A stretch of 64,000 nucleotides of DNA from Anthoceros angustus (taxonomy: Eukaryota; Plantae; Anthocerotophyta). The DNA lies in contig VJWM01000019.1 of assembly GCA_010909165.1 (NCBI GenBank), forward strand, positions 682,001 through 746,000. Direction: 5' to 3'. The position numbers and the translations under genes were made by a program. How positions within the stretch are numbered: position 1 is the first letter of the stretch; the number at the start of each line of letters is the position of its first letter. The notes beneath the pieces are model-generated. The model searched no databases, was not told where the DNA came from, and worked only from the letters and a program-made list of their open reading frames with translations. This document shows positions 2,922 through 51,590 of the stretch, piece by piece.

Positions 2922-3168
2922 CACCAAAGTGTGGTGTGTGGTGTGTGGTGTGTGGTGTGCGGTGTGCGGTGTGCGACACGCCGCACACCACACGCCATAC
3001 ACCATACACCGCACGCCGCACACCACACACCACACGCCACACGCCACACGCCACACGCCACACACCACACGCCACACACCACACACCACACACCACACAC
3101 CACACACCACACACCACACACCACACACCACACACCACACACCACACACCACACACCACACTTTGGTG
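2922..3168. repeat. 7-bp (CACACCA/TGGTGTG)n minisatellite arranged as a foldback
   Basis: A TGGTGTG run switches to a CACACCA run. The termini caccaaagtgtggtg and caccacactttggtg are inverted. Confidence 0.9.
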
Positions 3169-3202
3169 GGCTTGGCCTTATATAGTCCTAGCCTTAAATT
3201 CT

Positions 3203-3462
3203 ATTGGTCACTTGACCTTGAATCCTGCTGGTCATTTGACCTTGAATCCTGCTGGTCACTTGACCTTAAATCCTACTACTGGTCACCTGACCTTGAATCC
3301 TACTACTGGTCACTTGACCTTGAATCCTACTGCTGGTCACTTGACCTTGAATCCTCCTACTGGTCACTTGACCTTGAATCCTACTACTGGTCACTTGACC
3401 TTGAATCCTACTACTGGTCACTTGACCTTGAATCCTACTACTGGTCACTTGACCTTGAATCC
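3203..3462. repeat. Tandem repeat of 21/24-bp unit ctggtcacttgaccttgaatcctacta (~11 copies)
   Basis: Directly visible in the sequence. Confidence 0.95.
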
Positions 3463-3618
3463 TTCTTGTTACTTAACTTGCCCCTACTCTTGAGCCTTTG
3501 TAGAAGATACTTTCTAGAAAATACATGACTTTCTAGAAAATATACAAGTTTATTATTTTTAGGATACTATTCATAACATATTTTGATACGTTGTAATAAA
3601 TCATTTCTAACATATTAC

Positions 3619-4200
3619 ATCTCGGTGGTGGTGAAGGCCTTGGATGAGATTGGCAGCCTTTGCTGCTAGCTGGCTTGATCACCGCAAAGCCCATGGGGAT
3701 CATCATCATCTGGCCCTCTTGGAGCTCATCGTCGAAGCAGCGCTCGCCGTTGGGCTTGAGCACCTCCACTCGCACGCTTCCCTTGCTGCAGTAGAGCATG
3801 GTGTGGCCGTCAGCCAGGTACCCGGGAGCCAGCATGGCGTCAGGCTCGAGGTGGATTCCGATGGCGCCCAATCCTGTGCCCGGGCGCAGGGTCTTGAGCA
3901 CAGGCAGGCAGAATCGGTTGAGCACCGTCATGCACCCACCATTGCTGCTGTAGTGATCGCAGTTGGCGGTCTCCAGGTCGTACATGAAGTGCATCATGGA
4001 CATGGACAGGAAGGAGCCGCCGGTCTCAGCGTTCCCACCACGGCGGCACTGCCTGCGCATGCGCTGGTGGAAGGGATGATCCTCCTCCACCCGGATGATA
4101 CCCGTCTTCTTCTGGCTCGTCGTCAACCTCTCCACCTGCGCCAACATATCCTAGCTGAAGCCTTGCATGGGGCCGCCGCATTCCTCTGTCCTGCCCCCAC
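3619..4200 (-). pseudogene. Legumin/11S-like bicupin pseudogene fragment (corresponds to exon 3 of the gene at 11.9-14.2 kb)
   Basis: GGRTEECGGPMQGFS*DMLAQ has an in-frame TAG. AWDVDEQT is deleted, there is a frameshift near KGCQ, and the fragment ends at a GTAATG donor. Confidence 0.88.
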
Positions 4201-4594
4201 TTTCGTGATACCGCTTGTAGAGACCGGGTAATTCGAGGCACACACACATGTTGTGATAGACCAAGCCGGGGCCGGGTTTTGTAGCACTGCGGCTCGCGCC
4301 CCAGTTCAAATGACGGGCATGTAACTCCCCGTTAAACGAGAACGCTCTTCAATTAAAACGACATCCCTGTCTCGCCAATCTCCCACAAGATACAGATTCG
4401 ACTTGAAAAGACGGACGTCTACTCTGGGACACAACCCGATTTTACAGATCTTGCACAAGAGAAGATATGTGCGAGCTGAATTCATTTGGCTTTATTCACA
4501 TTGATGATGAATCCAGCTCGCTGTGTACAGTCATCACACTCTTATGCTCTTCTATGCACAGTAAAAACATCCCTAGCTTAGCACAAGGTTCAGC

Positions 4595-6998
4595 CTAGTT
4601 TTTGAGAAGATTCTTGAAAAACTTGTCGATGTTAAGAGGGAATCCACCATGGGCGCGGTTTCCATCCTCACGGCGCTGTTCTCTTTGCTCACGGCTCGGC
4701 GGCAGGATGGCAGCATACCTGGGGTGCCCCTGCATCAACTCTCTCACAGGCTTCTCGTCCACGTTGAATACGGCCATGAGGAGTTCTTGCGGCATGTTCC
4801 TCAACACACTGTCCTCCCCAGCCATATGCATCTTCATAGGTCTGCATCCCCAAGAGCACAATATCAGATCTCGTTTAAGAAGTATCCCACATAACGAGCG
4901 AAGCAAGAATGAAACAGATCCCCTCACGTGTCGCAGGTGGTGAAGGCCATAAGATGGCATCCTTCACGCCCAGCTCGCTTGATCACCGGATGCCCCATGG
5001 GGATCATCATCATCTGCCCCTCCTTCATCTCCTCGTCGAAGCTGCGCTCACCGGTAGGTCTCAGCACCTGCACGCGGGCACTTCCCTTGCTGCAGTACAG
5101 CAAGGTGTGCGCGTTCGCCATGTACCCGGGAGCTATCATCGCTTCCTGGTGAGCCATTGTACACACAATCACAACTCAAAACCGCAATGCAATGTAATGC
5201 AACGCAAGCTCTGGACGAGATCTCGCTTACAGGTTCGAGTTCAGTTCTGATAGCGCCCAATCCAGTGTTCGGGCGCAGGGTCTTGAGCACGGGCAGGCGG
5301 TACCGGTTGAGTACGGTCATGCACCCGCCTCCGCCGCTGTAGTGGTCGCAGTTGGCGCTGTCTAGGTCGTACATGAAATGCATCATCGACATGGATTGCA
5401 TGTTGGCCTCGCCGTTACTCCCGCGCCCGCACTGCCTCTCCCGCATCAGCTGGTGGAACGGGTGATCCTCGTCCACCCGCATAAAGCCCATCTCCTTCTG
5501 GCTTGTCACCAGTTTCTCCACCGTCTGGTCGTCCACATCCCATGCCTCCGCCAGAAGCTCCTTGCTGAATCCTTGCAGCACGCTGCCCCATTCCTCGCTC
5601 TCCTGTCCGACCAACGAGAATCCCTGCACACAACCCCGTCACATCCCACAGGATTCAAGAACTCATCAATTAGATTTGCCAAACCCTTGCTACTGCCTCA
5701 GCCCTACCGAGCAATCATGAAACAAATTTGCCAGAATCACGCTACTGCCTCAGCCTTACCGGGCACTCATTGAACAAATTCATGCTACTGCCCCAGCCTC
5801 ACCGAGCAATCATGAGCTTTACCGTGCATTGCCCAGGGTTCACTGCTGCCACAGAAGTGTCGGCGATGGCCACCAGATGACACTCTCCGCCGAGCTCCTC
5901 CTCCCGGTCGCGCTCCCTTTCACGTCGGTGCTTCCTCTCACCTTCCTCTTCACGACGCTGGCGTTCGCGTTCCCTCGCACGCTCCCGCTCTCGCTGCTCA
6001 CGTTCTTCCTCACGTCGCCCATGGTGCTGCTCACCCTCCTCCTCCGATCGGCCGCCATCTCTGTGCTCGCGCTCACGCTCGCGTTCCCTTTCCTCCCGCT
6101 CCTCTCGTTCCTCGGATCGGCCACCATCGCGATGGCGTTCGCGTTCTTCTCTCTCGCGCCCGCGCTCACGCTCCTCTTCCCTCCGCTTGCGCTCGCGATC
6201 GCGCTCGGACTCCTCGCGGCCGCGGTCCTCGTGCTCGCGCTCACGTCTTTCCTCCCGGCGATGGCGCTCGCGTTCCTCCTCCCTGCGCCTGCGCTCGCGC
6301 TCCCTCTCCCTCTCGCTCCTCTCGCGCTCGCGAGAGCGAGAGCGTTCTTCCCGTTCTTCCTCCGGGAGGCCAGCATCTCGCTCGCGCTCGCGTTCCTCCT
6401 CTTCGCGCTCACGTTCGCGCTCTTTGCGTTCACGTTCCTCCTCTCGGCGCTTGCGCTCACGCTCGCGTTCCTCCTCTCGCCCGTTGTGATACCGGCGCGC
6501 ACATCCCTTCTCTCCGGTGTTGTAGAACCAGAACACCATGCCGCGCGGAACCGCCACGACCTGGCCCTTCCTGATCATCTGGTAGTCCCGGCGCGCCCCC
6601 ATCGGCAGGCTCATTCCCATGATCGCCGACCCTGCCATCACCAACACGGTCCCAATCCAGAATCAGCACGCAGATGGTAGAAATCTGCAGAAAGCACATT
6701 CTGACGCTCAACTCCGATCGAAATGCTCACCTCGGGAACAGTAGAACAGCATCGCGGAGTCGGCGTACGTAGGGAGCAGCAGCCCACGCTCCTTGAGCTG
6801 GAACCGGGCGCCTTCCATGCGCGCATTCTTCAGCGACTCATGCTGTTCAGAACGCCACATGTCGAGCCGTCCCCCCTTGGACTCGTGCATCTTCTCGGAT
6901 TTCAGCATCGAGTGCCTCTCCTCACGGCCCATCGCCGTGGCCAGTAGTGAGGCCACCAGCAGGCTGGCCACCACCGATCGCATCCTCCCCGTCGCCAT
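4595..6998 (-). CDS. Secreted legumin/11S-globulin-like bicupin with Arg/Glu-rich insert, paralog A. Exons 6998-6731, 6631-5823, 5623-5231, 5145-4928, 4841-4595 (644 aa)
   Basis: Signal peptide MATGRMRSVVASLLVASLLATAMG. Cupin motifs GLLLPTYADS..FYCSRG, GQVVAVPRGMVFWFYN, GFSKELLAEAWDVD, NAHTLLYCSKGSARVQV, EGQMMMIPMG and AGEDSVLRNMP. All introns are GT-AG and the exons splice into one open frame. Confidence 0.9.
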
Positions 6999-7084
6999 GG
7001 TTGCAACTTCGATCAGCAGAGTTCTTAGCCACCAAGCAGTCGATGCAAGCACCGACGTGCGACAGATCAAGCAGGGGCCGGATT

Positions 7085-7276
7085 CTTATAGATGCCTGTT
7101 CATGCCCCAGCTGGAACCACGGCCAATTATCCCGCATGCAAGTCCCCGTTAAAAACTGTTGCCAGGCCTTGTGGATCCGTAACGTTCTGAAACTGCCGCA
7201 AGGTGTCTTCACTTGGTTCCCAAAGGCCAGTTTGTCGGCTTTCACCACTGACAGTTCGCTCCATGCTTTGAATCAG
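7085..7276 (-). promoter_or_regulatory. Promoter of paralog A: TATA (TCTATAAG) and RY element CATGCA (7135-7140)
   Basis: Blocks caattatcccgcatgcaa and ctccatgctttgaatcag are identical in the promoter of paralog B. Confidence 0.65.
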
Positions 7277-9621
7277 CAGCCTCCGTGTAGGAACAGCTCT
7301 CCCGTTCACTCCCGAGGCCCTTCAGGATGAGGATTACTTTCTGCGGGTAGTCCATCTGTGAAGCGGACTCAGCCTGCCGCCTACTACTTCTCATTGGCTT
7401 GAGTTTGGATTGACGCGGAAAAATAATTTCTACAACAAAAAAACTCCCAAGAAACCCTTGGGAAGGGACCTGTGGTTAAATTTAAGAATGGTAAAATCAG
7501 TTTTTAGTCTCAGCTGGTTACGTTTTTTTATCTCAGGCTATATTTTTATTCTCTAGGCTATATTTTCCATCCCCCGGTTATGCTGATCCTATGTTATGGT
7601 TGTCCCACACCACGACATGCTCGGAGAAGAGGTAGTTTCGAGATCCCGATAGATGGGAGTTCCATCTCTTTTTTCACATAAATTCTATAGTATGGTTATT
7701 TTGTGGATAAGAGATTATTTTAAATATTATTATTACATAGTAAATTTTGTATACCACTTTAAATACTATATAAAATCAAATATTATTATTATAGAGTAAT
7801 TTTTTCTTTCTAGAATTTCACCTTCTCCGTCCGTTCTAGTGGTCGAGTGCGCAAGGGCTCTTGACTAAGACAACGGCTTGACCTCATTTAAACATGCAAG
7901 CTTTTCTCTAGGGGAAACCAAGAAAATGCATATTAGATGAGTGGCAATGGAACGGAACCCGTTACCCAGCCTAGAGCCATGTGCACGTAAATTTGTCATG
8001 TACTGCTATGCCTGGCCCAACCAATTTGACCCTCCCTCAACTCATCTCTCGCTTGCCTCCGCCAGCAGCTGGTGCAGCTTGCCACAAGATCCGCGGTATG
8101 ATAAACTCAATTATTCATTGTATGTTGCAAATAATTAGTCACCACATGATCCATAATGTGATAAACAAAATTATCTATTTTATGATAAACGAAAATACTC
8201 CGATGACAACCCCAACATTGCCTGTTTACATCTCATGAACAAAATCACTGTCACTTAATCCACCATGTCTTGTGCGCTTCAAGACACTGTAATCACTTAC
8301 TCGTGACGAACTTCCCTCGTCCTACTCAGCTACCACCCTCACAATGCACCTCCGCGCGAGCTTCCAGAGCCCCATTTCCGTGTCTCATTCGCTCAACCCG
8401 CTTGCTTCAAAAACACCAAGGATTGCTTCCGAGGATGCTGAATATTAACCCCATTACATACATATGGTGTTTATAGTCATTCCTAATTGATATTAGCCAA
8501 ACATGATTTCCGCCTCTGTGAGTGGAAAGCACAGATCCTCTACATTGCAAGGCAAGCTTTGATCGGAACCAGTACCGTTGCAACCAAATCGGATTTGAAT
8601 CTAGATTGAGAGACAGCCACTTGAGCTGCTTTTTAGAAATAGCTCATGTGCTTCATCAAGAAATTGTAATGAAGAACTAAACCTAGAACTTAACTTAGAC
8701 ACTTGTTTAATAAATTCAATACTTAAAATCTAAATTCTCCATACAATGTGCTACTTTAGTGTAGATTGAGCCAAATATGGCTTATGGTATTCATACGACT
8801 TCGTGTACAAGAAGGTCTCAGGCGGATTGTGGTGAGAACCCATGAAAAACTGAATGCCGGTTGTGAATTCGAACTGTTGTCTAACCTAACTAAGCTATTT
8901 TATCTATCCTAAATTGGATTTATATCATTTAGTTATAGAACTTATGGTTTCTAGTTATGCATGCTATGACCGAGCATTCAAGGGAACGAGATGTGGGTAC
9001 ACCCTAGGGCTAGCTGCGGCCTGACGTAAGCTAACCTACTACTTGTGTACCGGTTGCATTGTCCCAGTGATGTTGCAGTTGGCAATTACTCTGCATAGCC
9101 ATGACATTGCCTGAGAATTCAAATTGCTCGTTTTTTTTGTTTGGATTGGAAAAATATTATCAAAAACTTGTAACGAACCTAAAGTTCATCTTGTCATAAG
9201 TTCTGGTAGAGGGAAAGGAATAAAGATTTAATTCCACTTCACTTGAAAGAATGTACTATAAAAAATATTTTTTTTTTGCTTATAAATATATATCATAAAT
9301 ATTGAACATATAGATATCGTGGTTTATAAATGTTGACACACTTATCATGTTTGTCGCATACATTTATGATTTATTGAGATATGATTGTCCAATTTAACAA
9401 GATTTATATTTATGATTTTTTTTCATATATGATTACCTAGTCCAACAAGGCTAATCCCCTCACTCTGAAATTTTGGGATCCCCATCAAGCCGCGATTGGA
9501 AAATGCACCAAGGTCACCATGAGTGGCATTTATACGGAACCGTACTCGGCCTAGAGCCAGATACATGTAATTTGTCATAGATTGTTATGCCTCTGCGAAC
9601 TAAATCCCTCCGTCACATCGC

Positions 9622-10160
9622 TCAATTCCCTTCGCTAGCGTTTGCTTCCTGTTGTCTTAGTTCATGCACCATCCATTCTATGATAAACGGACTTATGAAT
9701 TCTAAGATAAAATAAATTACTCCACCGAGACGTGGAACCCGGGTCAAAAGACTTAAGAAAGATATGATAGAATAAATTACTTCACCAAGACCCGGAACCT
9801 GGGCCAGCACTGTCAGTAGACCTATCTTATTTAAGATAAAAGGAATTACTCCACGAAGATGCGGAATCAGGCCACACAATGCCAATATAACCCCCATGTT
9901 GAAGGAAATTGCCATCACATGATCCACCACGAATGTTATCTTAGGACTTATGAATTGAACTATGATAAAATGAATTACTCTGCTGACACCCCGAAGCTCG
10001 GCCAACACTGCCATTAGACCTTTCACTAACAAAAACAATACTGGCAGTTGAGACTGAAACTGTATGATAAAATAAAGTACTTCGCGGAGAGCCGAAACCT
10101 GGGCCAACAATACCAGATGACCCCGAAGTTGAAGGAAATTACTACCCCTTGATCCACCAT
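9622..10160 (-). other. Hydrophobic ORF with ~20-aa internal repeats, probably frameshifted; degenerate paralog at ~7.9-8.3 kb
   Basis: Repeats of the type LAQVPGLGEVIYSII. An upstream MVDQGVVISFNFGVI start is in another frame. Confidence 0.35.
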
Positions 10161-11943
10161 GTCTTCCGTCTCAAGACTATTACACAATAATCAAAACTAG
10201 GTATCGATACTTTAAACTGCTCCCAAAAGAGGTCAAGCGTGACCAAAGTTAGCTATACTGCATCATAGTAAGACGGAATGTGCTTGTTGACATCACCAAA
10301 GTCGTCCCCTCTCTTTCAAAGCACTCCAGAAATCAAGAGACCTTCAAATTAAAACTCTGACGCCAAAAGACTAACCAATTCAAATATGATCGGTCTACTC
10401 ACATTCTCACGCCTCTTTATAGCGGATCTTATTTCGTAAGACCTAACGGCCGAATCAAACGTTCCTGTTGAACCCTTGAGTTTCCGTTGTGTTCAAACAT
10501 TTTTTTGGCCTGGGTCTGGGAACTTGAATACAAAGCATAACACCAGGTGGTTGGGCAAAGACTCCTGGGAGTTCATCAAAGATCCCATCACTTGCTTCTT
10601 CGTGCGAGCATAGACTATAACATGAGTGAAATTAAGGAAACGTGAGCACAAGTCCCCCGATCGATCCACATAGAAAAACATTCCAGAAGTTCTTGCTGGG
10701 TCTCGTGTTTCTATGCTCATGCCCCTCTCGACCAAGGCACGTGGTTCGCGAAAAAAAAGATGAAAGTGTCTCCCAGGTCCAGGACAATCGGCTTGGGAGG
10801 TGATCCAGTGGGACATCTTTCAGTTTCAGCACTTCCAGAAGCAGTAAAAACTAGTTAGCCGACAAGAGCTGTCTGCTTTCTCTGCCCAACTGTCACCATC
10901 CACAGTAGTGCCCGGTGTTTCTCTCTGAGGTCTTGGTTTGCGACGCTTCCGCTTAGTTTGGTTCAAAGTGCGCTTCGCATTCTGGGTCAGAATCTGACTG
11001 ATTCCGGGACCGTCTTCAGCAGCATTTGTTTCACATAGATCGAAGACCAAGGAAGCGTGAGGTCGAATGCAGTCGTCAAGGCTTTGGATTCCTAGCTGTG
11101 CACCGGCTGCGGTCAAGATGCCCAAGGTTGGGGAGGCTGGATAGAGAAGTAGGTAGCGTTTGGAGGCTACTACTACTGCCAGAGAGTGACAGAGTCATCG
11201 AAACTTAGATGACGGCTCATATGAATCGACTGTGACGACTCCTACAATTTCAGGTGGATTTCAAACTTGTAAGTGTTCACCTGCTGGAAAGCAGCTTCAC
11301 CAGGACACATAAATTGGCAGTCATGGCACTCTGGAAGTGTGAATCAGCTGAGCAAGGTTCCATGATTCCTACGCTGTTGACCCACAGTTTCAATTCACGC
11401 CTATTTGTACCCACTTGCGTGGCAAAGCCTGCTGAAGAATCGTCCCAACTGCGCAGAAGTGAAAGGCTTCCTGCCTACTCCGAATCCATCCATCGCCAGT
11501 GCCATTTCTCTGTAGGCCGACTCAAGATTACTCACGAATTTGCTTTGCAAGCTCAACAGTAAATGTCGTCACAACTTTATCTCATCGTAAAGGCACATGG
11601 ATCATTCACCATTTTCCCACCTCTGCAGTGTGTTTCTAAGGGTCAGCTTTTGTACTTTGTTTCTAAGGGCCACTCTCTGTTGTCTGTTTCTAAATGGCCC
11701 CCGCCGATAATCAGGCTGCCAGTCCACAGACCCGAAGATGGACAATTTACCAATCAGAATTTTAGCTGTCTGTTGCAAGTGCAATGCAAATTGCTAAACT
11801 CCGTTACATCACTTTGATGCTCCACTTGCTAGATCAGCAAGACGCTGAATCCAGCTTTCTTTGGACAAAAGAGTTTTTCCACTGGTATACACTCACTTCT
11901 CACTCTATGTACAGGCGAAAACGTCCTAACTGACATTAACTGC

Positions 11944-14220
11944 CTAGTTCTTCAGCAAGTTCTTGAAGAACAGCTCGATGTCGATGGGAAGAGCGAACCC
12001 TCCATGACGCCGACCTTCATCATGTCCACGCTCTCTTTCCTGGCGGCTCGGCGGCAGGATGGCAGCATGCTTGATGCGGTGCTCCATCAACTCTGTCACA
12101 AGTTCTTCGCCGACGTTGAAGGCAGCCATGAGCAGTTCTCGCGGCATATTCCTCATCACATTATCTCCTCCAGCCATATGCATCTTGATGGGCCTGCATC
12201 CATCACAGCACAAAATGCACACGACGGAAGTTGGATCCCAAACCACACAGACTATAACACTGCAAACAGCCAGAAAGGACAGGGTTTTGGACATACAAAT
12301 CGGAGGTGGTGAAGGCCATGAGACGACATCCCTCGCGACCAGCTCGCTTGATCGCCGGATATCCCATGGGAATCATGATCATCTGCCCCTCCTGAAGCTC
12401 CTGGTCGTAGCAGCGTTCCCCGTTGGGCCTGAGCACCTGCACGCGCACGCTCCCCTTGCTGCAGTACACCAAGGTGTGCGCATTGCTCATGTACCCGGGG
12501 GCCACCATCGCTTCAGGCTCCAGGTCAGTTCTGATGGCTCCCAATCCAGTGTTCGCGCGCAGCGTCTTGAGCACCGGAAGGCGGAATCGGTTCAGCACAG
12601 TCATACACCCGCCCTCGCTGCTGTAGTGATCGCAGTTGGCCGTCTCCAGGTCGTACATGAAATGCATCATCGACATCGACTCCATGGACCCCCCGCTCTG
12701 GTCGTTCATACGGCGGCACTCCCTGTGCATGAGCTGGTGGAAGGAGTGATTCTCCTCCACCCGGATGATGCCCGTGCCCTTCTGGCTCGTCGTAAACCTC
12801 TCCACCGTCTGCTCGTCCACGTCCCAGGCCTGCGCCAGCATATCCTTGCTGAAGCCCTGCATCAAACCCCCGCATTGCTCTGTCCTGCCTCCCGCCAGCA
12901 TGAAGCTCTGCAGCACGAAGTCGGTTTGCACATTCAGATTCCATCACCTCACATTCATCCCCGGCCGTTTCTTGAAGCAAGCTCAAGACAAGATTACCAT
13001 AATCCACTCATGATGCTGCTATTGATCATTACTGGAGGTGCTAGTACACGCAATGATTCTGCCTTACCGTGCATCGTCCCCGCTCCACTGCCGCCAACGA
13101 TGTGTCCGCGATGGCGACGAGCTCGCACTCTCCACTGACCTCTTCCGGGTTCTCGCCGTGCTTCCGCCCGTGCCCTTCACGCTCGCGTTCGCGTTCGCGC
13201 TCTTCCTCCTCTCGTCGCTTGCGCTCGCGTTGGCGCTCGCCTTCCCGCTCACGGTCTTCCGCACGTTCGCGTTCTTCCTCCTCCCGGCGCCTGCGTTCAC
13301 GGCGCTCGCGCTCCTTCTCCTCCTCGCGTTCACGCCGTTCTTCCCGCTCCCGTTCCTCCTCGCGGCGCTTGCGCTCGCGCTCGCGCTGCTCCTGGCGCTC
13401 GCGTTCTTCCTTCTCTCGGCCGCCGTCCTTGCGTTCACGCTCGCGCTCACGTTCCTCTTCTTGGCGCTCACGCTCGCGCTCCTCCCGCCGGTGCCTGCGC
13501 TCGCGTCCTTCCTCCTCTTCGCGCTGGCGTTCTTCCTCCCGACGGCGGCGCTCGCGTTCGCGCTCCTCCTGCCGTTCACGATCTTCCTCGCGGCGGTGGC
13601 GCTCGCGCTCGCGTTCGCGTTCTCGCTCACGCTCCTCCTCACGTCGACCGTTGTCACGGCGGCGGCCACCTCCTCCGGTTTCTCCCGCGTTGTAGAACCA
13701 GTACACCATGCCGCGCGGGACGGCCACGACCTGGCCCTTCCTGATGATCCGATAGTCTCGGCGGGCGCCCATGGGGAGGCTCATCCCCATCATCGCCGAC
13801 CCTGCGGTCACCAACACAGTCCCAAGACAACATCCATCAGCAATCGGATCGCAAATCGCACCCCGCTGCATAGCAGAATGCACACATTGTATTGAATTTC
13901 GACAAACTGGAAGCAACTGCAGCTCGGATCCAATTGTGGAACAGGCACTGACCGCGGGTGCAGTAGATGAGGAGAGAGGAGTCGGTGTACTTCGGCAGCA
14001 ACAAGCCGCGCTCCCGGAGCTGGATCCGGCCGGCTTCCATGCCCGCATTCCTCAGCGCCTCATATCGGTCGGATCGCCACATGTCCAATCGGCCTCCCTC
14101 GGACTCGAACATCTTCTCGGCTTCCAGCGTCCCTCGGCTCTCCTCACGAGCCACCACTGTGGCCACCAGCGCGGCCAGCAGGAGGCTGGCCATCGCCACT
14201 CGCATCCTTCCCGTCGCCAT
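11944..14220 (-). CDS. Secreted legumin/11S-globulin-like bicupin with Arg/Glu-rich insert, paralog B. Exons 14220-13953, 13801-13068, 12907-12297, 12193-11944 (620 aa)
   Basis: Colinear with paralog A. Signal peptide MATGRMRVAMASLLLAALVATVVA, the same cupin motifs, GT-AG introns, open frame and C-terminus FFKNLLKN. Confidence 0.9.
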
Positions 14221-14300
14221 GGTCGCAACTTCGCTGTACACAGCTTCAACACCAAGCACTCGAGGCGCACACAGATGTGATTTGGGAAGCAGGGCCGGAC

Positions 14301-14480
14301 TTTATAACACCTGTTGGACCACTTCCATCCTCAAACGACGGGCAATTATCCCGCATGCAACTCACCGCTAAAAACTGTTGGCAAGCCTTGTGGTTCCCTA
14401 ACTCAAACTGCCGAAACATGTCTTCTGTTACTTCCCAAACCGGCACCATCACTGCCAGTTCCCTCCATGCTTTGAATCAG
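14301..14480 (-). promoter_or_regulatory. Promoter of paralog B: TATA (TTATAAA) and RY element CATGCA (14354-14359)
   Basis: Same order and similar spacing of motifs as in paralog A. Confidence 0.65.
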
Positions 14481-16739: not shown

Positions 16740-18460
16740 TTTGTAGGCCACCGGGTTCACCTGTTGTGTGATGTGAAACGGGCCGGTGAATCGGTAGGAG
16801 AGCTTGCTCTTCTTCTGGACTAGTGATGGGTATCGGTGTGTCTTCATTCGGAGCCATACTAGCTACCCCACGTGGTAAGTGACTGCCCGCCGATGCTTGT
16901 TAGCCGATTTGCTGTAGCGGTCTTGGGCGGCTGTTAGTTTCTTCTGTGCTTGCTGAATCTCGTGGAAGATATCTTCCGCCAGTTTAGCTGCACTCTACCG
17001 TTTTCTCTGTGCAGAGGGCTGCAAACCAGGTGGAGGCGGACACTCACCATCAAGAAGCTTGAAGGGAGCAACGCTTGTGGCAGTATGGCGGGAGGTGTTG
17101 TACGCAGATTCCAATAATGGTATCATCGCTTCCAATTAACCTTGCTTCTCATGAGTGAAATGTTGCAACATGTCTTCTAAGACGATTGTGGTTCTCCGCT
17201 TGTCCATCCGACTGGGGTGGCATGAAGAGGAGAGGTTTTGTTGTATGCTCAATGTCTCGGTGAAGGTCCTCCAAAACCCTGAAGTGAACTTTGTGTCCCT
17301 GTCTGACACGATCCTGTCCGGGGTTCCGTGTAAACGGAAAATCTCTGATGAATAAGCGGGCGGTGAATCGGTAGGAGAGCTTGCTCTTCTTGGACTAGTG
17401 ATGGTATCGGTGTGTCTTCATTCGAGCCATACTAGCTACCCGTGGTAAGTAGCGCTTGTTAGCCGATTCTTTGCGGTCTTGGCGGTATTAGTTTCTTCGT
17501 TGAATCTAAGTGGAAGATATCTTCCGATTTAGCACTCTACCGTTTTCTGCAATGTGCAAACCAGGTGGAGGCGGACACTCACCATCAAGAAGCTTGAAGG
17601 GAGCAACGCTTGTGGCAGTATGGCGGGAGGGGTTGTACGCAGATTCCAATAATGGTATCATCGCTTCCAATTAACCTTGCTTCTCATGAGTGAAATGTTG
17701 CAACATGTCTTCTAAGACCTGATTGTGGTTCTCCGTTTGTCCATCTGACTCGGGGTGGCATGAAGAGGAGAGGTTTTGTTGTATGCTCAATGTCTCGGTG
17801 AAGGTCCTCCAAAACCCTGAAGTGAACTTTGTGTCCCTGTCTGACACGATCCTGTCTGGGGTTCCGTGTAAACGGAAAATCTCTGTGATGAATAACTGGG
17901 CCAGTTTTGCTGCCAAAACCGTTGCCGTGGTCTGGATGAGGTGGCATGCCTTGGACAAACGGTCCATGACCACCCTTCTGCTATTCTTACCAGATCGAGT
18001 CCGGAGAAGATGTGTGATGAAGTCCATCGAGATGGATTGGAACCTGCTTGTTGGTATCTGCAAGGGTAACAACAAGCCGGGTTGTTTCTGATTTTCGGTA
18101 GCGGACCGAGTTGATGGTATCAGCTCTTAAGCCATCCCAATAGAAATGCTCCTTCACCTGTGCATATGTCTTGTCTATGCCGAGATGTCCAAGGATGGGG
18201 CTGGCATGTAGATCATGGAGAATTGCTCTCATCACATCTGATAGCTGCTGAGGTATGACCAGGCGTCCCTTCCTATACAAACAAGCATCTTTGATGGTGT
18301 ATTCTTGCATGAGGCTAGTGGGTACACCTGTATGAGCATTTGTTAATAATTGTTGATATGTTGCCCAATGTAGGGTCTTGGGGGAGGGACTCCCTGACTT
18401 GACGTATGGTGTCCAGCTGGGTAGTCATGAGAGAACAGGCTCTATGACTGAGGGCGTCTA
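16740..18460 (-). mobile_element. Ty3/gypsy integrase region (partly duplicated in tandem)
   Basis: HASPILGHLGIDKTY (HHCC finger), ISMDFIT...VMDRLSKACH, IVSDRDTKFTSGFW, HPESDGQTE and KLSYRFTGPFHITQQVNPVAYK (GPF motif). Confidence 0.92.
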
Positions 18461-19809: not shown

Positions 19810-20167
19810 CACTTTCCATGTCTCCATGCTGAAGCCGATGGTCGAGCATCCGCCTCACTTCAAGCAACCTTCAGACGGGACGTAGGTACCTCAGAACCCT
19901 GCACCCCCCCTCTCCGATGTCTTGCCACAGAGCCTGGAGGCCACCACAGCCCCGACACCGGTACCTACCAGCCAAACAGCTCAGCATCGCGATCAGCTTT
20001 CAGCACACAAGCCCAACAGAATACTATGGTATCGACACAAGAAGCTCCACACCCATACCATCACAGATTACCTGGTGGGATGGAGCGGCGAACCAGATGA
20101 CCTCGCGTCCTGGGAAACCGCCAAATGGTGCCAACGCTTTCTGTGGGCTACGGACTCCTCTTGGGGG
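19810..20167 (+). mobile_element. Ty3/gypsy (chromovirus) integrase C-terminus and chromodomain
   Basis: TFHVSMLKP followed by PNRILWYRHKKLHTHTITDYLVGWSGEPDDLASWE (YLVxWxG...SWE chromodomain signature). Confidence 0.85.
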
Positions 20168-23100
20168 TTAGGAAATAAGTTGGGTTTTGTTTTTTTCGTA
20201 GGTTCGAAGTGTAAAATAAGGCGGAAAAGGAGGAATAAGCAGACGGCACTCCGGACTGTGCTCCGGAGTGCAGTCCGGACTCCGGAGTAGGTAACGGACC
20301 CCGGTACCACTACGAAGAACCTCGGACCGCGCACCGGGGTATTGGGATAAGTCCGGACCCCACTCCGGGTCAAAACAGGATAAGTACGCCAGGGAAAGTA
20401 ACTTAGAAGTTGGGTCGTGAGTTAGACTGAGCGGCGCCACGTGGACGGCCCGGAATGGAAGACGGCATGCAGCAGCCAACAAGGAGGTTCGGTCTAAGAG
20501 CCTTGAGAGGAAGGCGGAAGGCGGATAGGCGGCAAGGCCGCAGTAGGCAGCGTAAGGCGAGTAGGCGGGCGTAAGGCGAGAGTAAGCCATGCGGGCCCAG
20601 CGATTATGGATAGCAAGAGCCACCCCTCCGCTGCTACTCCGACACGGAGGCAAGGCGGAGGTCATTCTCCCAAGTAACTTCGCAGCGATCTTCGCCTGCT
20701 CTCGCGCTCAGACACCCGGCCCTCTGGCGTTGTCTTTTTGATCACCCAGGCACCCTTCGGCGCAGCTCGACTTCGCGGAGGAAGCAATTGACGCCGCGGC
20801 CAAGGAGCGGACGACTGCGGAACCTCACACTCCAACAGCGGGGCAGAAGGAGCGGGGAGATGGGACCCAAGAAAGCGGCGGAGGTCTGGGCGCCATGGAA
20901 CTTGGTGGAGCGCAACATTGTCACCCGGCGCTATCCGGACTTCGGGCCGTGGCTGGAGGAGGCGGGGGAGTTGGTCGAGGAGTGGCACCTGGACGTTTTC
21001 CAGGCTGTCTGGACATTTGACAGTGTCACCCTAGTCCGGGAGTACGCCCGGAAGATGTTGGCAGCAGCCAACAAGGAGGTTCGGTCTAAGAGCCTTCGAG
21101 AGGACCCCAGGAGGTGGACAGTGGAGGTCCTGAGGGCGGTGTACAACCGCCCAGCGGAGGAAATTGGGGGCGTAGTCCCAGAACCCCTCAAGGCCAGAGG
21201 GAAGATAGAGGCGGCAAAGGCCGCCCTACTGAAGCCAGGAACGCAACGGACCACCAATGGCTGGCTGATGTCGGAGTTGCTAGACAGGAGGGTGCGAGCA
21301 GTGGCCAGGATAATTGTCCACTGGAACATGCTCACCAAGGTAGATCACCTTGGTGACAATCTGCTGGTGTTCCTGCATGCGCTACTGAGAGGAAGGCGGA
21401 TCGGGAAGGATCATCTTCGCCAGATCAATCATGAAGCTCACAAGCTGAGGTGTGAGAAGCCTCCTCCGTCGGCGTTATCGCCGTTCTTAATTCATGTGGG
21501 CACGCGACCTCAAGGAGGGAAGAGGAGCGCGACCAAGGGACCGCCGCCTACCGGAGGCGTAAGGAAGAACCAGAGGTGGAAGCCCGGCCCGTCCGAGCAA
21601 GAGGGCGGAGGAGGAAGGCGGATAGGCGGGAGGAGGAATCCCGATTCCATACCTTTGGAGCGGACTCCCTCGCCACCAAGGGAAGTGTGGGAGGACATCC
21701 CCGCTTCCCTCCTCCTGGTGCCCCACCGAGCAAGAGGCGGCGGAGGCGGCCCTGTGAGGTGGAGGAGGCGGCCCGGCTGCACAGCCCCACCGCCCCACGA
21801 CGGCCGATGAGCCCCGACGGACTCGTCGGGGGCCGAAGAGGCGGAAGACGGTGCCACCCGCCAACGCAACACCGGACGGCGCCTGTGCCCTTGCCCCTGC
21901 CAACGGAGTGGCAAGAAGTCAAGAGGCGGTGAGAAGGCGAAGGCGGGGAGGCCGAGGAGGCGGGGAGGCCAGGCAGCCCCACCCGAGCCGGGTCCTGCCT
22001 CCGACGGGAGAGGCAAGAGGTCGCTCGAACCCCTCACCCTCCGAGCCCCAGGAGAAAGAGGGCGAACAAGGAATTGGCGGCCAAGAGGGCCAAAGAAGGT
22101 GAGGCTCCGGACCTCGGTACTCAGGACCTAAGGGCCCTGATTAGGACCGGAGAGCCCAGCCCGGACTCGCTCCGGACTGCGGTATGGAGGTCCTTGGCGG
22201 ACCGAGAGATGCCCGCCCCCACAACGGACTTCTTGGGGGCCTCACCAGTGGCAGCCGTGGAAGAGACACGGCGGGTCCTGGCTACCGTCATGGACGGTAT
22301 GCTCTGGGGTCTCTGCGGGACGGCCGAGAAGACCCAGGAGGTGGAAGCCACAAGGAGGCGCATGGTGCTCCTCCGGGAGGCGAGATGGAGGCGGCCCTGT
22401 GAGGCGAGGAGGAAGGCGAAGCCTCGGCCGCATCGAGGAAGGGAAGCGCCGGAGGCCGGAGGAAGTCCGTCCATTCGACAGATCGACTAAGTTTCTTCAC
22501 CGTGAGTGAGCACAAGGCGCATAGTGCTCCTCCGGGAGGCCCAAGCACGGCCGAGGATCTCGCCAACGGAGGAGGCGCAGCAGAGGCGGAGAGGGCTCGA
22601 GACCTAGGCGGGAGGCCGAGGCGGAAGATGCCACCCGCCAACGGAGTGGCAAGAAGTCAAGAGGCGGAGAGGGCTCGAGACCTAGGCGGAAGCGGAAGCC
22701 AAGAAGGTCGACCGGGATCACTATCGACGTGATCGAACCGGTGGAGGAGGCGGCCGGGAGGCGGAAGATGCCACCCGCCAACCTCAAGGCCGAGGCGGAA
22801 GGAAGGAGGAGGAGAACGCCGAGCCGTGAGGAGGCGGAGGAGGAAGCACCCGGGAGATCGGGGACCTCGAGTGCAGTGCAGGAGGTAGAGGCGGCGGGGA
22901 GGCGGAGGACAAGAAGGATACCTTGAGCCGCAACTCCAAGACGACGGAGCAGCAGGGGTTCTCAACGAGAGAATCCAAGACTTCGAGGAGATAGAGCGCC
23001 CAGCCCGCTTGAAGACGGAGGAGAATAGGCGACGGTGCAAGGAGTTTGATGTCGCGAGGCTGCAGCGGGAGGTGGAGGAAGTCAGGAGTCGGACGGGGAT

Positions 23101-25098
23101 ACCGGCCCGCCTGGAGAAGGAAGTAGCGGACCTCCGGGAAAGGATAACGGAGGGAAGAAAGCACTTGAGGAGAAGCAACGGCTGCCGTCCAGTGAAGTGA
23201 GAGGAGCTCGGCTCCATGGCCCGCAACCGCAGAGCCGAACACGGGAGGAGGAGAACGCCGAGCCAAGGCCGCAGGAGGTGACGGAGGCCGCCTTGACGCA
23301 TCAAGGAGTCCGCCCGCCTACGGTTGGTAAGCTTAGCCACGGACGGCCAGCCGACAACATGCCCACCGGAGCACCTCCGAGGAGGGGAGTACCGGTGCTC
23401 CGGCTCATGTGGAGGAGGCGATTCAACAAGTCGATTCCGACCGCCTATTACCACGCAGAGCTCCTCAAGGCTTTGAGGTCCCGCGCCACCCCAGGCGGAG
23501 GTGGACTTCGGAAGGCGGAAGGAAGGAGGAAGGACTGGGACAGCAGCCCACGGGACCCTAGGAGGCGGAGAGGGCTCGAGACCTAGGCGGGAGGCGAGGA
23601 GAGCAGCGGAGGAGCCGGAGAAAGGGTCACTACATCGGAGGTAAGCACTCGGCACCCTTGCGGAAGGAAGGAGGAGGATCCTGGGAGGCCATGGAAGGGG
23701 CGAACCGGGCATTCGGAACCAAGGGAGGGCTCGGTGGATGAGCCGTGATCGCCCGGGAGGAGGCGTAACAGAGCCATTGGGTGGACTTTGTCCGGACTCG
23801 AGGAAAGGCCGGCTCAAGTCCGCCCTCAAGGAAGTCCGGACTTAGAGATCCAGGACTCTAGTGACGAGACGGACCACGAGGTCCGGACTCTAGGGAAGGG
23901 TTGGGTCCAAGACCGGACCCGAGGCAAGTCCGGACCCGAGGTCCGAACTCGGAAAGGAGGCGGAAGGAGGCCGGACCCAGGCCGGACCTAGAGGTCCGGA
24001 CTGGAGTCGAGACGGGTCCCGAGGTCCCGACTGTGGAGTGGGGAGAGCCACCAATCACCACCCCAGATCAGCCTTGAGGGCCTGCGCAGGGCCCGCCAGA
24101 GATAAGAGAGGAGGGGAGGAGGACTTGGTGGTGGCCGGACCCGAGGCAAGTCTGGAACCCGAGGTCCCGACTCGGGGAGAGGAAGGGGTCCCGCCTCGCG
24201 GATCATCCGATTGGGTGCGCCGCAGTCGTCAGGGCTCGGCTTTGGGCCGCCGGTGCCAAGAAGGAATTAGGGGCCATCCCAGTCCCACCACCGACGGCGG
24301 AGATAGGGGGGATAAGGAGGATAGTAGGCAGCCGGTTAGGGCACACTGAGCTGCCCCTCAGCCCAGAATAGAGGTGTAATAAAGGCGCCGACCTTCGGCG
24401 TAGTATAAGAGGGCTGAGGCTGCTCTGAATAAATCATCTTCTCTTGGTGTTGATGCGCGTTTTCCTTACGGACCCTTGTGCGCCTTTCTTGCTAACGTGA
24501 GTCCCGAGTCACTGAAAGGTGCACGATGAGAGATCGATCAAGGTCCCGTGACGGACCCTAACGTGTAGTTGTGTGTGCAGGAAGAGCGATCGGGGACCCT
24601 TGTTCGTCGAGGCGGCCAGTCGAACGGACCGGAACGTGTGAGCTGGAGGAACTCCGGGAGGGCGTGCAGAGCCCGGACGGAGAGACCCGGCAAGAGCGAT
24701 GGAGGAGCTCCGGACTGTGCGGCTACTCGCGTTTTTCCCAAGGTTGATGAGGGTAGTGTGAGTGGTGAGAGGAACGGACTAGAGGAACGGGTGACAAGCG
24801 TAAGCGATACGGACGCGAACGGGTCCTTAAACGTTTGGCCACACCGGGCCTGTTCGGTGGACATTACGAGTAGTTAGGCGCAAAATGACGGATGTGTGTG
24901 TTGAGGCTGAACGTTCATAAAGTGAGGTGAGAATCGATTGAAACGCGGCAAATGGAGCCTATCATTCTCTTGGGAGCGGACTCATTACTACAACGACACG
25001 GGATTGTGCGCGCCCGGCTGGCCGTCAGCGAAAGTCGCGCCACACTTTCCTTAGCTCCGCGCAGCCCTTGATGGTCAAGAGGACCAGACCATGCTTAG
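20168..25098 (+). mobile_element. GC-rich retroelement-associated region carrying an extra ORF (starts MGPKK at 20860; frameshifted coiled-coil portion downstream)
   Basis: Lies between the chromodomain and PPT/LTR. Homologous pieces occur at 42.5-43.5 kb and 45-47.3 kb. Contains gaggtccgga-type subrepeats. Confidence 0.7.
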
Positions 25099-28703: not shown

Positions 28704-29945
28704 ATGAACAATAACGATACGCATATGAATGTCTCTTATGAGCACATAGACGGGGAATGCCGAAACTGTAAAACGGCCACCTACATGCTATGTGATAGAC
28801 ACTCCGGAGACCATGTATGTACCAATTGCGGCTTGGTATCGGAGGTACATTGCATCGACACCACCGCCGAATGGAGGGTAGTTGCTTATGATACCTGCTT
28901 TTCAAGCAATCATATGGGGAACCCTAAGAATAATATTTTGCTCGAAAATGCTAGTCCAACAACTAGCTTAAATGGCAGGGACGCAAATGTGAAGCGTAAG
29001 AGGATTACACATATACCACCAATAGGAATACAAAACTTAGATACCGATCCTCACGAAGTCCTAGATGTGAACCGTAAGAAGATTACACATATACCACCAA
29101 TAGGAATGCAAAACTTAGATAGCGATCCTCACAAAGTCTTAGATGTGAAGCGTAAGAAGACTACACATATACCAATAAGGATCCAAAACTTGCCAAATTT
29201 GCCAAACTTGCCTATGGATACCAATCTTGACGAAGTCCTAGATGTGAACCCTGAGAAGATTACACATATACCAGTAACGATGCACAACTTGGATATTGAT
29301 CCTCAACTCAAAGTCCTAGACGACGCTAGAGAATGTATCAAAGCAGCTGCTAAACATTTGGATTTGAGTGACGAAGTTCAAAATTCGGCAATGTTCTTTT
29401 TTGCGCAACTGATGGATTTGGGTGAGAATAATATCCAAGAGTGCCTCGCTGCAGCCCTTTATGTGGCCAGCAAATGGAAAAGCACTACTCGCACCACCGA
29501 GGAAATTAGGTGTTGTGTAAGTATGGACTTAGAAAATAAAGCTATTAAGCAGTTGGCAAAAAAGCTGGAAGCATACATCCTAAGTAAGGCTGATGAACAA
29601 ATTAAAGTAGCTGCTGAAAAATTGGAATTGAGTAGTGAGGACCAAGTTTCGACACGCTTTCTTTTTAAGAAATTGGTTACGGATGTGAGAAGGGACAATT
29701 TGCAAGAGACCGTGGCTGCAGCTCTCTATATAGCTAGCATTCACACTCTCGACGAAGTTCGATATGGTATAAATATGGCAATTAAAAGGGAGGTTATTAC
29801 ACAATTGGCAACTAAGTTGGAACAATTCTTACATCGTGAGAAAGAGGCAAGGATAAGGGCAAAAAAGGAAGAGATGAAATTAGAGGAAAAAAGGGAACAA
29901 GTAAGGGTGGGAGGACAAACCGAAGTCCAAGCCAAAGCTGGTTAG
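28704..29945 (+). CDS. Divergent intronless TFIIB-like protein (413 aa)
   Basis: Zn ribbon CRNC..D..SGDHVCTNCGLV..HCIDTTAEWR aligns with the plant TFIIB N-terminus. Two cyclin-fold repeats with AAALYVAS/AAALYIAS. TATA near 28325 and a plausible 5'UTR intron ending at 28654. Confidence 0.8.
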   Translation: MNNNDTHMNVSYEHIDGECRNCKTATYMLCDRHSGDHVCTNCGLVSEVHCIDTTAEWRVVAYDTCFSSNHMGNPKNNILLENASPTTSLNGRDANVKRKRITHIPPIGIQNLDTDPHEVLDVNRKKITHIPPIGMQNLDSDPHKVLDVKRKKTTHIPIRIQNLPNLPNLPMDTNLDEVLDVNPEKITHIPVTMHNLDIDPQLKVLDDARECIKAAAKHLDLSDEVQNSAMFFFAQLMDLGENNIQECLAAALYVASKWKSTTRTTEEIRCCVSMDLENKAIKQLAKKLEAYILSKADEQIKVAAEKLELSSEDQVSTRFLFKKLVTDVRRDNLQETVAAALYIASIHTLDEVRYGINMAIKREVITQLATKLEQFLHREKEARIRAKKEEMKLEEKREQVRVGGQTEVQAKAG

Positions 29946-33914: not shown

Positions 33915-35507
<1,593 letters not shown>

Positions 35508-50384: not shown

Positions 50385-51590
50385 CTAGAACCCAAGCGCT
50401 TGAGGTGCAAGCTTCTCCAGCACGTGTGCAGTCCCTGCAGCAAACTTGCGGGCGAACAGGAAACATGGTGCGTGTCTGATGGCCATATGCGAACATGGCA
50501 AGGACGCGTTGTCCGCTGCAGTATCATGCCGGGCTCCCACCATGTCGAACTGCAAGCCTCGAATCTCATTTAGAAACTCTAGAGAAATCGTGTCCACATC
50601 GTAGGTGAAGGGTGAACTCGTGTGAGGATGCTTCCAGTTCACGTACATGATGGTCCGGTTGGCAATGCCCCCTGCATCCTTGATATGCAGCAGAGTCTGG
50701 ATGTACTGCTCATCAGGAGCACACATCCAATTGCAGTCTCGAAGAAATTTGTAGTACAAGGACCATTCCCCCACAATCATCCTAGCGTGCCTGCGATGCA
50801 CTGCCATCCAAAGCTCACCCTTCCTAAGCCTGTCCATGGAAAAATCAGGACGACTGTCCCAGCTCAGATATCTCTCCACCGGCCGGAAGGACTCCACGAA
50901 GCTCACTTGCGAGCTCATCAAGTACTGGTAGACGAACGGAAGACTCCGTAGCGGGATGGTTGATTCGCACACGAAGGTGAACCATTCATTGGACCTCTCT
51001 TCATCCAAGAGTGCGTTGGCCAGGAGCCTTCTCATTGCATCCACCAGGCTCCCAGAGAGCCTTTCCACCGGTTTGCTGGCAATCTCTTTGCCCCAGAAGA
51101 TGGAACTCTTTGGATATCTGAAACCTGGAGATGCATGTATGTAGATGGCGTACTTGTCGTCATGGCCGTGGAAGAATTTCGCCCACAGTGCCTCGTGAGG
51201 CATCTGTCCCCGTACAATAAACAGAAATGCCACCCTCTGATGGGTTTCAGACTGAATCGGTCCAGCTGCAGAGCTTGCTTTCATGAGCAATTCCGCTTCT
51301 GTCAGATGCTTCCAGGTCTTGATGTAACGGACAATGGTCGGCACACGTAGAGCTGCCAATTCCTCGCTCCTATGTCCGTTATCATCTCCTACAGGAAGCA
51401 TGGTTGTAGACTTCCGTGTGCTGCCATCCTTCTCTCTGGAGAAAGCAACGTTGATCCCCAACCCCCTCGACCTGAATGTCGATGGTGACGACACCGACCA
51501 CAGTTGCAGGAACAAGAGAACAGCTGCAGCACACACCATCGCGGTGCACACCATCATCTGCATGCCCTGGCAACGGGACAAGGTGCCCAT
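50385..51590 (-). CDS. Core-2/I-branching GT14-like (DUF266/BC10-type) glycosyltransferase, intronless CDS
   Basis: Type-II TM, RVAFLFIVRG.MPHEALW.KFF.GH, DAMRRLLANALLD, ESTIPL, PDEQYIQTL and FLFARKF. Confidence 0.93.
   Translation of the reverse strand: MGTLSRCQGMQMMVCTAMVCAAAVLLFLQLWSVSSPSTFRSRGLGINVAFSREKDGSTRKSTTMLPVGDDNGHRSEELAALRVPTIVRYIKTWKHLTEAELLMKASSAAGPIQSETHQRVAFLFIVRGQMPHEALWAKFFHGHDDKYAIYIHASPGFRYPKSSIFWGKEIASKPVERLSGSLVDAMRRLLANALLDEERSNEWFTFVCESTIPLRSLPFVYQYLMSSQVSFVESFRPVERYLSWDSRPDFSMDRLRKGELWMAVHRRHARMIVGEWSLYYKFLRDCNWMCAPDEQYIQTLLHIKDAGGIANRTIMYVNWKHPHTSSPFTYDVDTISLEFLNEIRGLQFDMVGARHDTAADNASLPCSHMAIRHAPCFLFARKFAAGTAHVLEKLAPQALGF

Follow-up and report, generated by a model that had tools for sequence, protein, structure and literature searches.

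The 64,000-nucleotide (nt) window analysed here, i.e. the whole stretch covering positions 682,001–746,000 of contig VJWM01000019.1, carries on its minus strand two intact paralogous genes, A and B, and a broken third copy, pseudogene C, all of which belong to the bicupins. With moderate confidence, we read the products of A and B as secreted, non-enzymatic, pre-11S "legumin-like" bicupin globulins that would serve as a reserve of nitrogen and sulphur. What is new in these proteins is the combination of methionine (Met)-rich barrels with a predicted helical insert of arginine (Arg) and glutamate (Glu).

Gene models

Models of A and B were obtained by reading the minus strand, followed by a script check of splice sites, phases and stops.

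Gene A: 6998..6731, 6631..5823, 5623..5231, 5145..4928, 4841..4595, minus strand; 5 exons, 644 amino acids (aa)
Gene B: 14220..13953, 13801..13068, 12907..12297, 12193..11944, minus strand; 4 exons, 620 aa

All splice sites of both genes are GT-AG, the phases are consistent, in-frame stops do not occur, and the introns measure 85–199 nt (99, 199, 85 and 86 nt for the four introns of gene A). Gene B is devoid of the intron which divides ...LEP/EAM... in gene A. A tblastn search of the window for homologues of the B exons identified two full copies and one copy of exon 3 alone, and none other, in agreement with the two intact minus-strand paralogs and one broken copy described by the first-pass annotation. 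A search of sequencing runs identified none from RNA for this stretch, and the single run listed yielded no contigs over 3500-7400.

Protein architecture and family placement

Pfam Cupin_1 matches both halves of the proteins (in gene A, exons 1, 2 and 4), so that the assignment of two cupin domains holds; a search of NCBIfam gave no match. The N-termini were judged by eye to be signal peptides, and the homologues of A and B likewise begin with signal-like sequences.

Predicted signal peptide of A: 6927..6998, minus strand; 24 aa, with a basic n-region, a 14-residue hydrophobic core, and A-x-G before REERH
Predicted signal peptide of B: 14149..14220, minus strand; 24 aa, with V-x-A before REESRG

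The best solved relatives of B exon 3 in the Protein Data Bank (PDB) are 11S globulins (E 4.5e-27), with matches spanning the inter-domain region and the C-terminal barrel, and B exon 1 matches 11S N-terminal barrels (E 2.9e-6, PDB). Vicilins and Mn-cupins match B exon 3 at E values of 5e-4 or weaker, those of Mn-cupin structures being about 0.007. A and B thus resemble 11S globulins such as amaranth 3QAC, glycinin and cruciferin in combining a signal peptide, which in A and B is a predicted one, with two Cupin_1 barrels. In contrast to the 11S proteins, however, both alignment and motif scan indicated that A and B lack the processing signature N-G-x-[DE]-[DE]-x-x-C (NG-EE-C); in the alignment, the place of the processing site is taken in B by GGSMESMSMM and in A by a stretch ending in ANMQSMSMM. 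Residues other than Cys occupy all aligned positions of the four canonical intra- and inter-chain cysteines of 11S globulins in both A and B. The absence of the 11S site and its Cys had been noted before, together with an Asn in the linker of each copy, and the contexts given for the latter, SNG (A), MND (B) and GNA (C), were found as described. Among the 85 homologues kept for tree building, the NG-EE-C motif scan was positive in 29, all of which fall into the 11S clade; the motif-bearing homologues are labeled as seed-plant 11S, 13S or legumin proteins, including those of Ginkgo and Pseudotsuga.

An exhaustive representative search with B exon 3 retrieved 286 relatives, none of which exceeds 52% identity, the best full-length match showing 39%, while a word-index protein search with the same exon found no match within the length range of 112–355 aa. 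The closest relative found, at 52% identity, is L001 1-1093 (Logan SRR33208241), a genomic contig of another sample. The top named matches are proteins of Diphasiastrum, Ceratopteris, Spirogloea, Calypogeia, Chara and Selaginella ("legumin A"), followed by Psilotum, Closterium and Klebsormidium. In a careful maximum-likelihood (ML) tree, which comprises 60 rows and 194 columns, is based on B exon 3 only, is unrooted and has a weak backbone, the 11S clade (support 100/99) excludes the window protein, as does an earlier quick tree. The At1g07750-like clade (100/95) excludes it as well. Instead, the window protein joins Ceratopteris P0006 and the transcript P0001 at 98/98, amid secreted proteins of seed-free organisms. 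A position of the window protein beside the 11S branch, as suggested by the quick tree, was dropped, since the careful tree has Psilotum P0011 in that place (88/89).

The first-pass annotation had placed the proteins outside the ordinary 11S and At1g07750-type families, which the cupin tree bears out, but had regarded them as a lineage intermediate between the two, and this view has to be abandoned. A and B are divergent members of an old and widespread assemblage of secreted legumin-like bicupins that extends from Klebsormidium to ferns, with members in Klebsormidium, Chara, Zygnematophyceae, a liverwort, lycophytes and ferns; this assemblage is a poorly resolved, probably paraphyletic grade. 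For comparison we used proteins from Ceratopteris (KAH7437763), Selaginella (XP_002988902), Diphasiastrum (KAJ7298410), Calypogeia (CAM6089674), Chara, Spirogloea, Closterium and Klebsormidium. These seed-free secreted bicupins share the architecture of A and B, lack the NG site, and have an I(F/L)PPS motif followed by a variable C-terminal tail. They are, however, only 33–40% identical to A and B, consist of 350–480 aa without a large insert, and most of them are not Met-rich (family median 1.7–1.9%). The motif AILPPS and the terminal IDKFFKNLLKN noted earlier are both present in gene A, but the tail, which had been called hydrophobic, is amphipathic and charged.

Bicupin genes are also clustered in Chara braunii (CBR_g40949, 40951 and 40952) and in Calypogeia fissa (several on one contig), and those of Spirogloea muscicola adjoin each other (s20:636912-639648 and s20:641881-644391); the tandem arrangement therefore recurs across streptophytes.

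The signal-less homologues of about 358 aa (Phaseolus, Acorus, and a partial Selaginella sequence) are of the At1g07750 type. Proteins of the At1g07750/At2g28680 type, such as the "glutelin type-A 2-like" protein of Phaseolus and the proteins of Acorus, share the motifs GFS..AWD.D...V..L..SQ and FPP with A and B, but have a length of about 356–358 aa, lack a signal peptide and form a clade of their own, whereas A and B comprise 620–644 aa and have a predicted signal peptide. It is very improbable that A and B are merely ordinary seed-plant 11S globulins or signal-less At1g07750-type proteins: even though the best PDB matches are 11S globulins, and GFS..AWD.D and ILPPS are common to the At1g07750-type proteins, their exclusion from both well-supported clades, the missing NG-EE-C site and cysteines, the predicted signal peptide, which sets them apart from the At1g07750 type, and a seed-free host (see below) all argue against it.

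Intron history and selection

Intron positions were compared with those of six relatives, the exons being mapped onto their genomic loci. Introns 1–3 of gene A occupy the same alignment columns in the genes of Selaginella, Diphasiastrum, Calypogeia and Klebsormidium and in the 11S gene of Erythranthe, so that A and the angiosperm 11S gene have three identical intron positions. Intron 4 (FTTCD/T) is common to gene A, the Selaginella, Diphasiastrum and Calypogeia genes and the At1g07750-like gene of Phaseolus, but is absent from the Erythranthe 11S gene examined. The four introns of gene A are thus those of the lycophyte and liverwort genes, Klebsormidium sharing the first three, whereas the At1g07750 type has positions 1 and 4 and is missing introns 2 and 3. 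The shared positions support the gene models. Gene A keeps the ancestral structure of the whole superfamily, while gene B and pseudogene C have undergone a precise loss of intron 3, which is retained, after ...RLEP, in the L001 relative.

Outside the insert, A and B show 63–84% amino-acid identity per exon, with a synonymous divergence (dS) of 0.67 and a ratio of nonsynonymous to synonymous divergence (dN/dS) of 0.26. The duplication is therefore old, and both copies are constrained, having been kept by purifying selection since.

The Glu/Arg insert

About one third of each protein consists of a Glu/Arg insert, which in A and B is located in the same loop of barrel 1 (in A, between ...WFYNTGEKG and CHLVAIADTS).

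Glu/Arg insert of A: 5883..6503, minus strand; 207 aa, 39.6% Glu, 36.7% Arg
Glu/Arg insert of B: 13128..13673, minus strand; 182 aa, 41.2% Glu, 37.9% Arg

Charged, expandable low-complexity regions are also known from 11S globulins, but there the usual hypervariable region lies before the cleavage site. Arg is encoded in the inserts by five or six codons (six in A) of both codon families. The third-position entropy amounts to 1.85–1.87 bits, compared to 1.1–1.5 bits at positions 1 and 2 (in A, 1.87 versus 1.28–1.51 bits), and the guanine-plus-cytosine (GC) content of 68–70% (68% in A) contrasts with 45–51% in the introns. The insert DNA of B has weak, degenerate tandem structure only, and the reading frame is retained across the insert in both genes. 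On the basis of the codon statistics, the GC content and the frame kept in both copies, we rejected the possibilities that the insert is an overlooked intron or a simple repeat at the DNA level. Despite their unequal length, and although no alignment between them is possible, the two inserts are alike in composition. Since they maintain this composition without alignable sequence, use all Arg codon families and have free third positions, the data suggest that the insert is coding sequence, with selection acting on composition.

AlphaFold modelling of exon 2 of gene A alone predicted long helices at residues 49–85, 90–186 and 203–246, mostly with a predicted local distance difference test (pLDDT) score >90; the model thus assigns a helical structure to the insert with high confidence. 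At the insert loop, the L001 relative has about 30 residues, and the expansion is therefore specific to the A/B lineage.

Methionine content

The whole proteins contain 17–18% Arg, 18% Glu and 5.5% Met. In the barrels Met reaches about 8%, and in B exon 3, which codes for the C-terminal barrel, 8.4%, compared to a family median of 1.7%; A and B are also far richer in Met than 11S globulins. The storage-like composition in nitrogen and sulphur attributed to the proteins by the first-pass annotation is thus reflected in these values, and the strings MQSMSMMHFM, GQMMMIPMG and PMKMHMAG cited for Met richness all occur in gene A. High Met contents are likewise seen in the nearest relatives (P0001, 7.5%; Ceratopteris P0006, 7.1%; the L001 gene, 12.7%). 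In B exon 3, seven of the 17 Met residues take the place of conserved aliphatic residues of the core; the others are at variable or linker sites.

Clusters of the Met-x-Met and Met/His kind are found repeatedly in A and B as well as in the L001 relative, and about half of the Met residues are at variable or linker positions rather than in the core, as might be expected of a secreted metal-binding cupin, e.g. for Cu(I), with SMSMMHFM, PMKMHMAG and MGMSLPMG providing thioether ligands. We consider such a function improbable. In the alignment of A and B, the classical cupin metal ligands His/His/Glu/His (HxH...E) are absent, with a single NAH only, as in 11S proteins; moreover, seven Met residues take buried aliphatic positions, the large Arg/Glu insert would be left without a role, and structures of metal cupins match at E values of about 0.007 only.

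Promoter and pseudogene C

About 230 nt upstream of A and B can be aligned. This region contains an 18-nt element, identical in the two genes, which precedes a TATA-like box by about 35 nt and has an RY core. ABI3, FUS3 and LEC2 bind RY, the motif of the legumin box, and an RY-type promoter motif is a further feature in common with 11S globulin genes.

18-nt element TTGCATGCGGGATAATTG of A: 7124..7141, minus strand; RY core TGCATG, 126–143 nt before the ATG
TATAAGA of A: 7084-7090 (sequence)
Identical 18-nt RY element of B: 14343..14360, minus strand; 123–140 nt before the ATG
TATAAA of B: 14301-14306 (sequence)

Exact matches to the element in the window number two, compared to 0.05 expected. 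It has been preserved at 18 of 18 positions and at a similar distance from the ATG, although synonymous sites of A and B differ by 45%; it is decayed in pseudogene C. This pattern constitutes a promoter footprint, whereas a link of the element to B3 factors is a putative one.

Pseudogene C: 3622..4198, minus strand; homologue of B exon 3 only
Decayed promoter/5' remnant of pseudogene C: 4205..4400, minus strand; in the alignment, RY core mutated (TTACATGC) and an 11-nt piece deleted

The DNA of pseudogene C is 83.7% identical to B exon 3. It is interrupted by a premature stop codon (TAG, 4151-4153), has lost 24 nt and, near the 3' end, shows a frame disruption of +5 nt; it is without intron 3 and thus B-like. 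Because a decayed copy of the shared promoter sits directly upstream, C derives by deletion from a complete B-like gene and is more than a stray exon. Its earlier description as a "pseudo-exon" therefore applies insofar as a broken copy of exon 3 is present, but is too narrow in view of the decayed promoter that precedes it. Directly downstream of pseudogene C, at 2929-3463, where the homology to gene B ends, an (ACACACC)n microsatellite of about 33 copies is followed by a 27-nt minisatellite of 10 copies.

Host and neighbouring genes

The host was placed by means of two other genes of the window.

RPL3 gene: 34420-35507, plus strand; exon used for host placement
GT14 "BC10-like" glycosyltransferase gene (PF02485): 50385-51590, minus strand; intact, single exon

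The RPL3 exon product shows 88–91% identity to those of Riccia, Diphasiastrum, Sphagnum and Adiantum, compared to 83–86% to angiosperm proteins. The GT14 protein matches Diphasiastrum (48%, the best named match), mosses (46%), Calypogeia (38%) and angiosperms (≤39%). Since the best named matches of the two proteins are from lycophytes, mosses, liverworts and ferns, sequence comparison identifies the host as a seed-free land plant, as had been surmised.

An open reading frame (ORF) of 413 aa on the plus strand (28704-29945) has a TFIIB-like zinc ribbon at its start and contains, in its interior, a series of near-repeats of the form KKITHIPPIGIQNLD...VLDV. A GC-rich block at 20000-24000 (62–65% GC, with strong AT skew and long overlapping ORFs on both strands) is probably transposon debris; a retroelement integrase-like ORF (17671-18075) is located near it.

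Proposed function

If the reserve interpretation is correct, the signal peptide would direct the chain into the endoplasmic reticulum, possibly en route to the vacuole, and the two cupin barrels would fold like an 11S or 7S protomer. The protein would probably remain a single chain and form trimers at most, because it has neither an Asn-Gly processing site nor an inter-chain disulfide. Nitrogen would be stored in the helical Arg/Glu insert, which would be located in a surface loop and be free to expand, and sulphur in the form of Met across core and linker positions. Transcription would probably proceed via the conserved RY element, the motif of ABI3-type B3 factors, and the protein would build up in a resting stage that tolerates desiccation, most likely that of maturing spores, to be broken down at germination. 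The more specific proposal that A and B provide the spores of a bryophyte lineage, probably that of a hornwort, with storage globulins and are switched on via an RY/ABI3-type element is a tentative one.

The main alternative is that A and B code for bicupins of the vegetative gametophyte which respond to stress or desiccation via abscisic acid (ABA), are induced on drying, and act as protectants instead of being mobilised as a reserve. In bryophytes, RY/ABI3 control is linked to vegetative desiccation tolerance, and Met residues can serve as oxidant sinks, both of which would be compatible with this explanation. The genome paper of Anthoceros angustus interprets tandem bicupins in the same sense (PMC7027989). 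On balance we regard a protective role as unlikely, though well short of negligible, because a composition so extreme in Arg/Glu and Met, together with an insert that expands freely, fits selection for amino-acid content better than it fits a protective fold.

A tandemly expanded bicupin family of a hornwort is already known: the genome of Anthoceros angustus encodes 31 bicupins, the most of the plants compared, which expanded by tandem duplication and were read as drought adaptation, and "nutrient reservoir activity" heads the enriched terms of its species-specific families (PMC7027989). By description, A and B are like these genes in belonging to a seed-free plant and to tandem bicupins which were automatically annotated as 11-S/nutrient reservoir proteins. 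The paper confines itself to counts and a tree; Met richness, an insert of Glu and Arg, the evolution of the introns and the promoter element are not described in it, and our literature search did not turn up any publication dealing with the expression of such hornwort genes, their Met richness or their Glu/Arg insert.

Several points weigh against the reserve interpretation. The Anthoceros study views the bicupin expansion of its species as an adaptation to drought stress and not as a spore reserve (PMC7027989). The models of A and B, and with them the translated insert in its full length, were derived from the sequence itself, and the signal peptide and the putative vacuolar targeting are by-eye readings. 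Just seven of the 17 Met residues of B exon 3 are at aliphatic core positions, and the Met/His clusters could bind metal. Finally, the RY core is a 6-mer, and B3 binding in the host is putative.

Implications

The secreted legumin-like bicupin and its intron structure long predate seeds; the Torreya genome paper, for comparison, places the origin of 11S globulins in seed plants, stating that none were found before these (PMC10006428). At least one seed-free lineage has given a legumin-like bicupin a composition of the storage type and a promoter that contains an RY motif. If A and B are indeed spore globulins, the "seed" storage module, consisting of an RY promoter and a secreted legumin-like bicupin, would already have been part of a spore programme in early land plants, and the A/B lineage would have raised the nutritional value of the protein independently, through substitutions to Met and through the growth of a helical nitrogen store of Arg and Glu within a loop of the barrel. 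Expression in spores, if true, would make these genes a tractable bryophyte case of a seed reserve programme recruited from a spore programme, as well as a natural Met-rich globulin scaffold that tolerates an insert of 200 residues.

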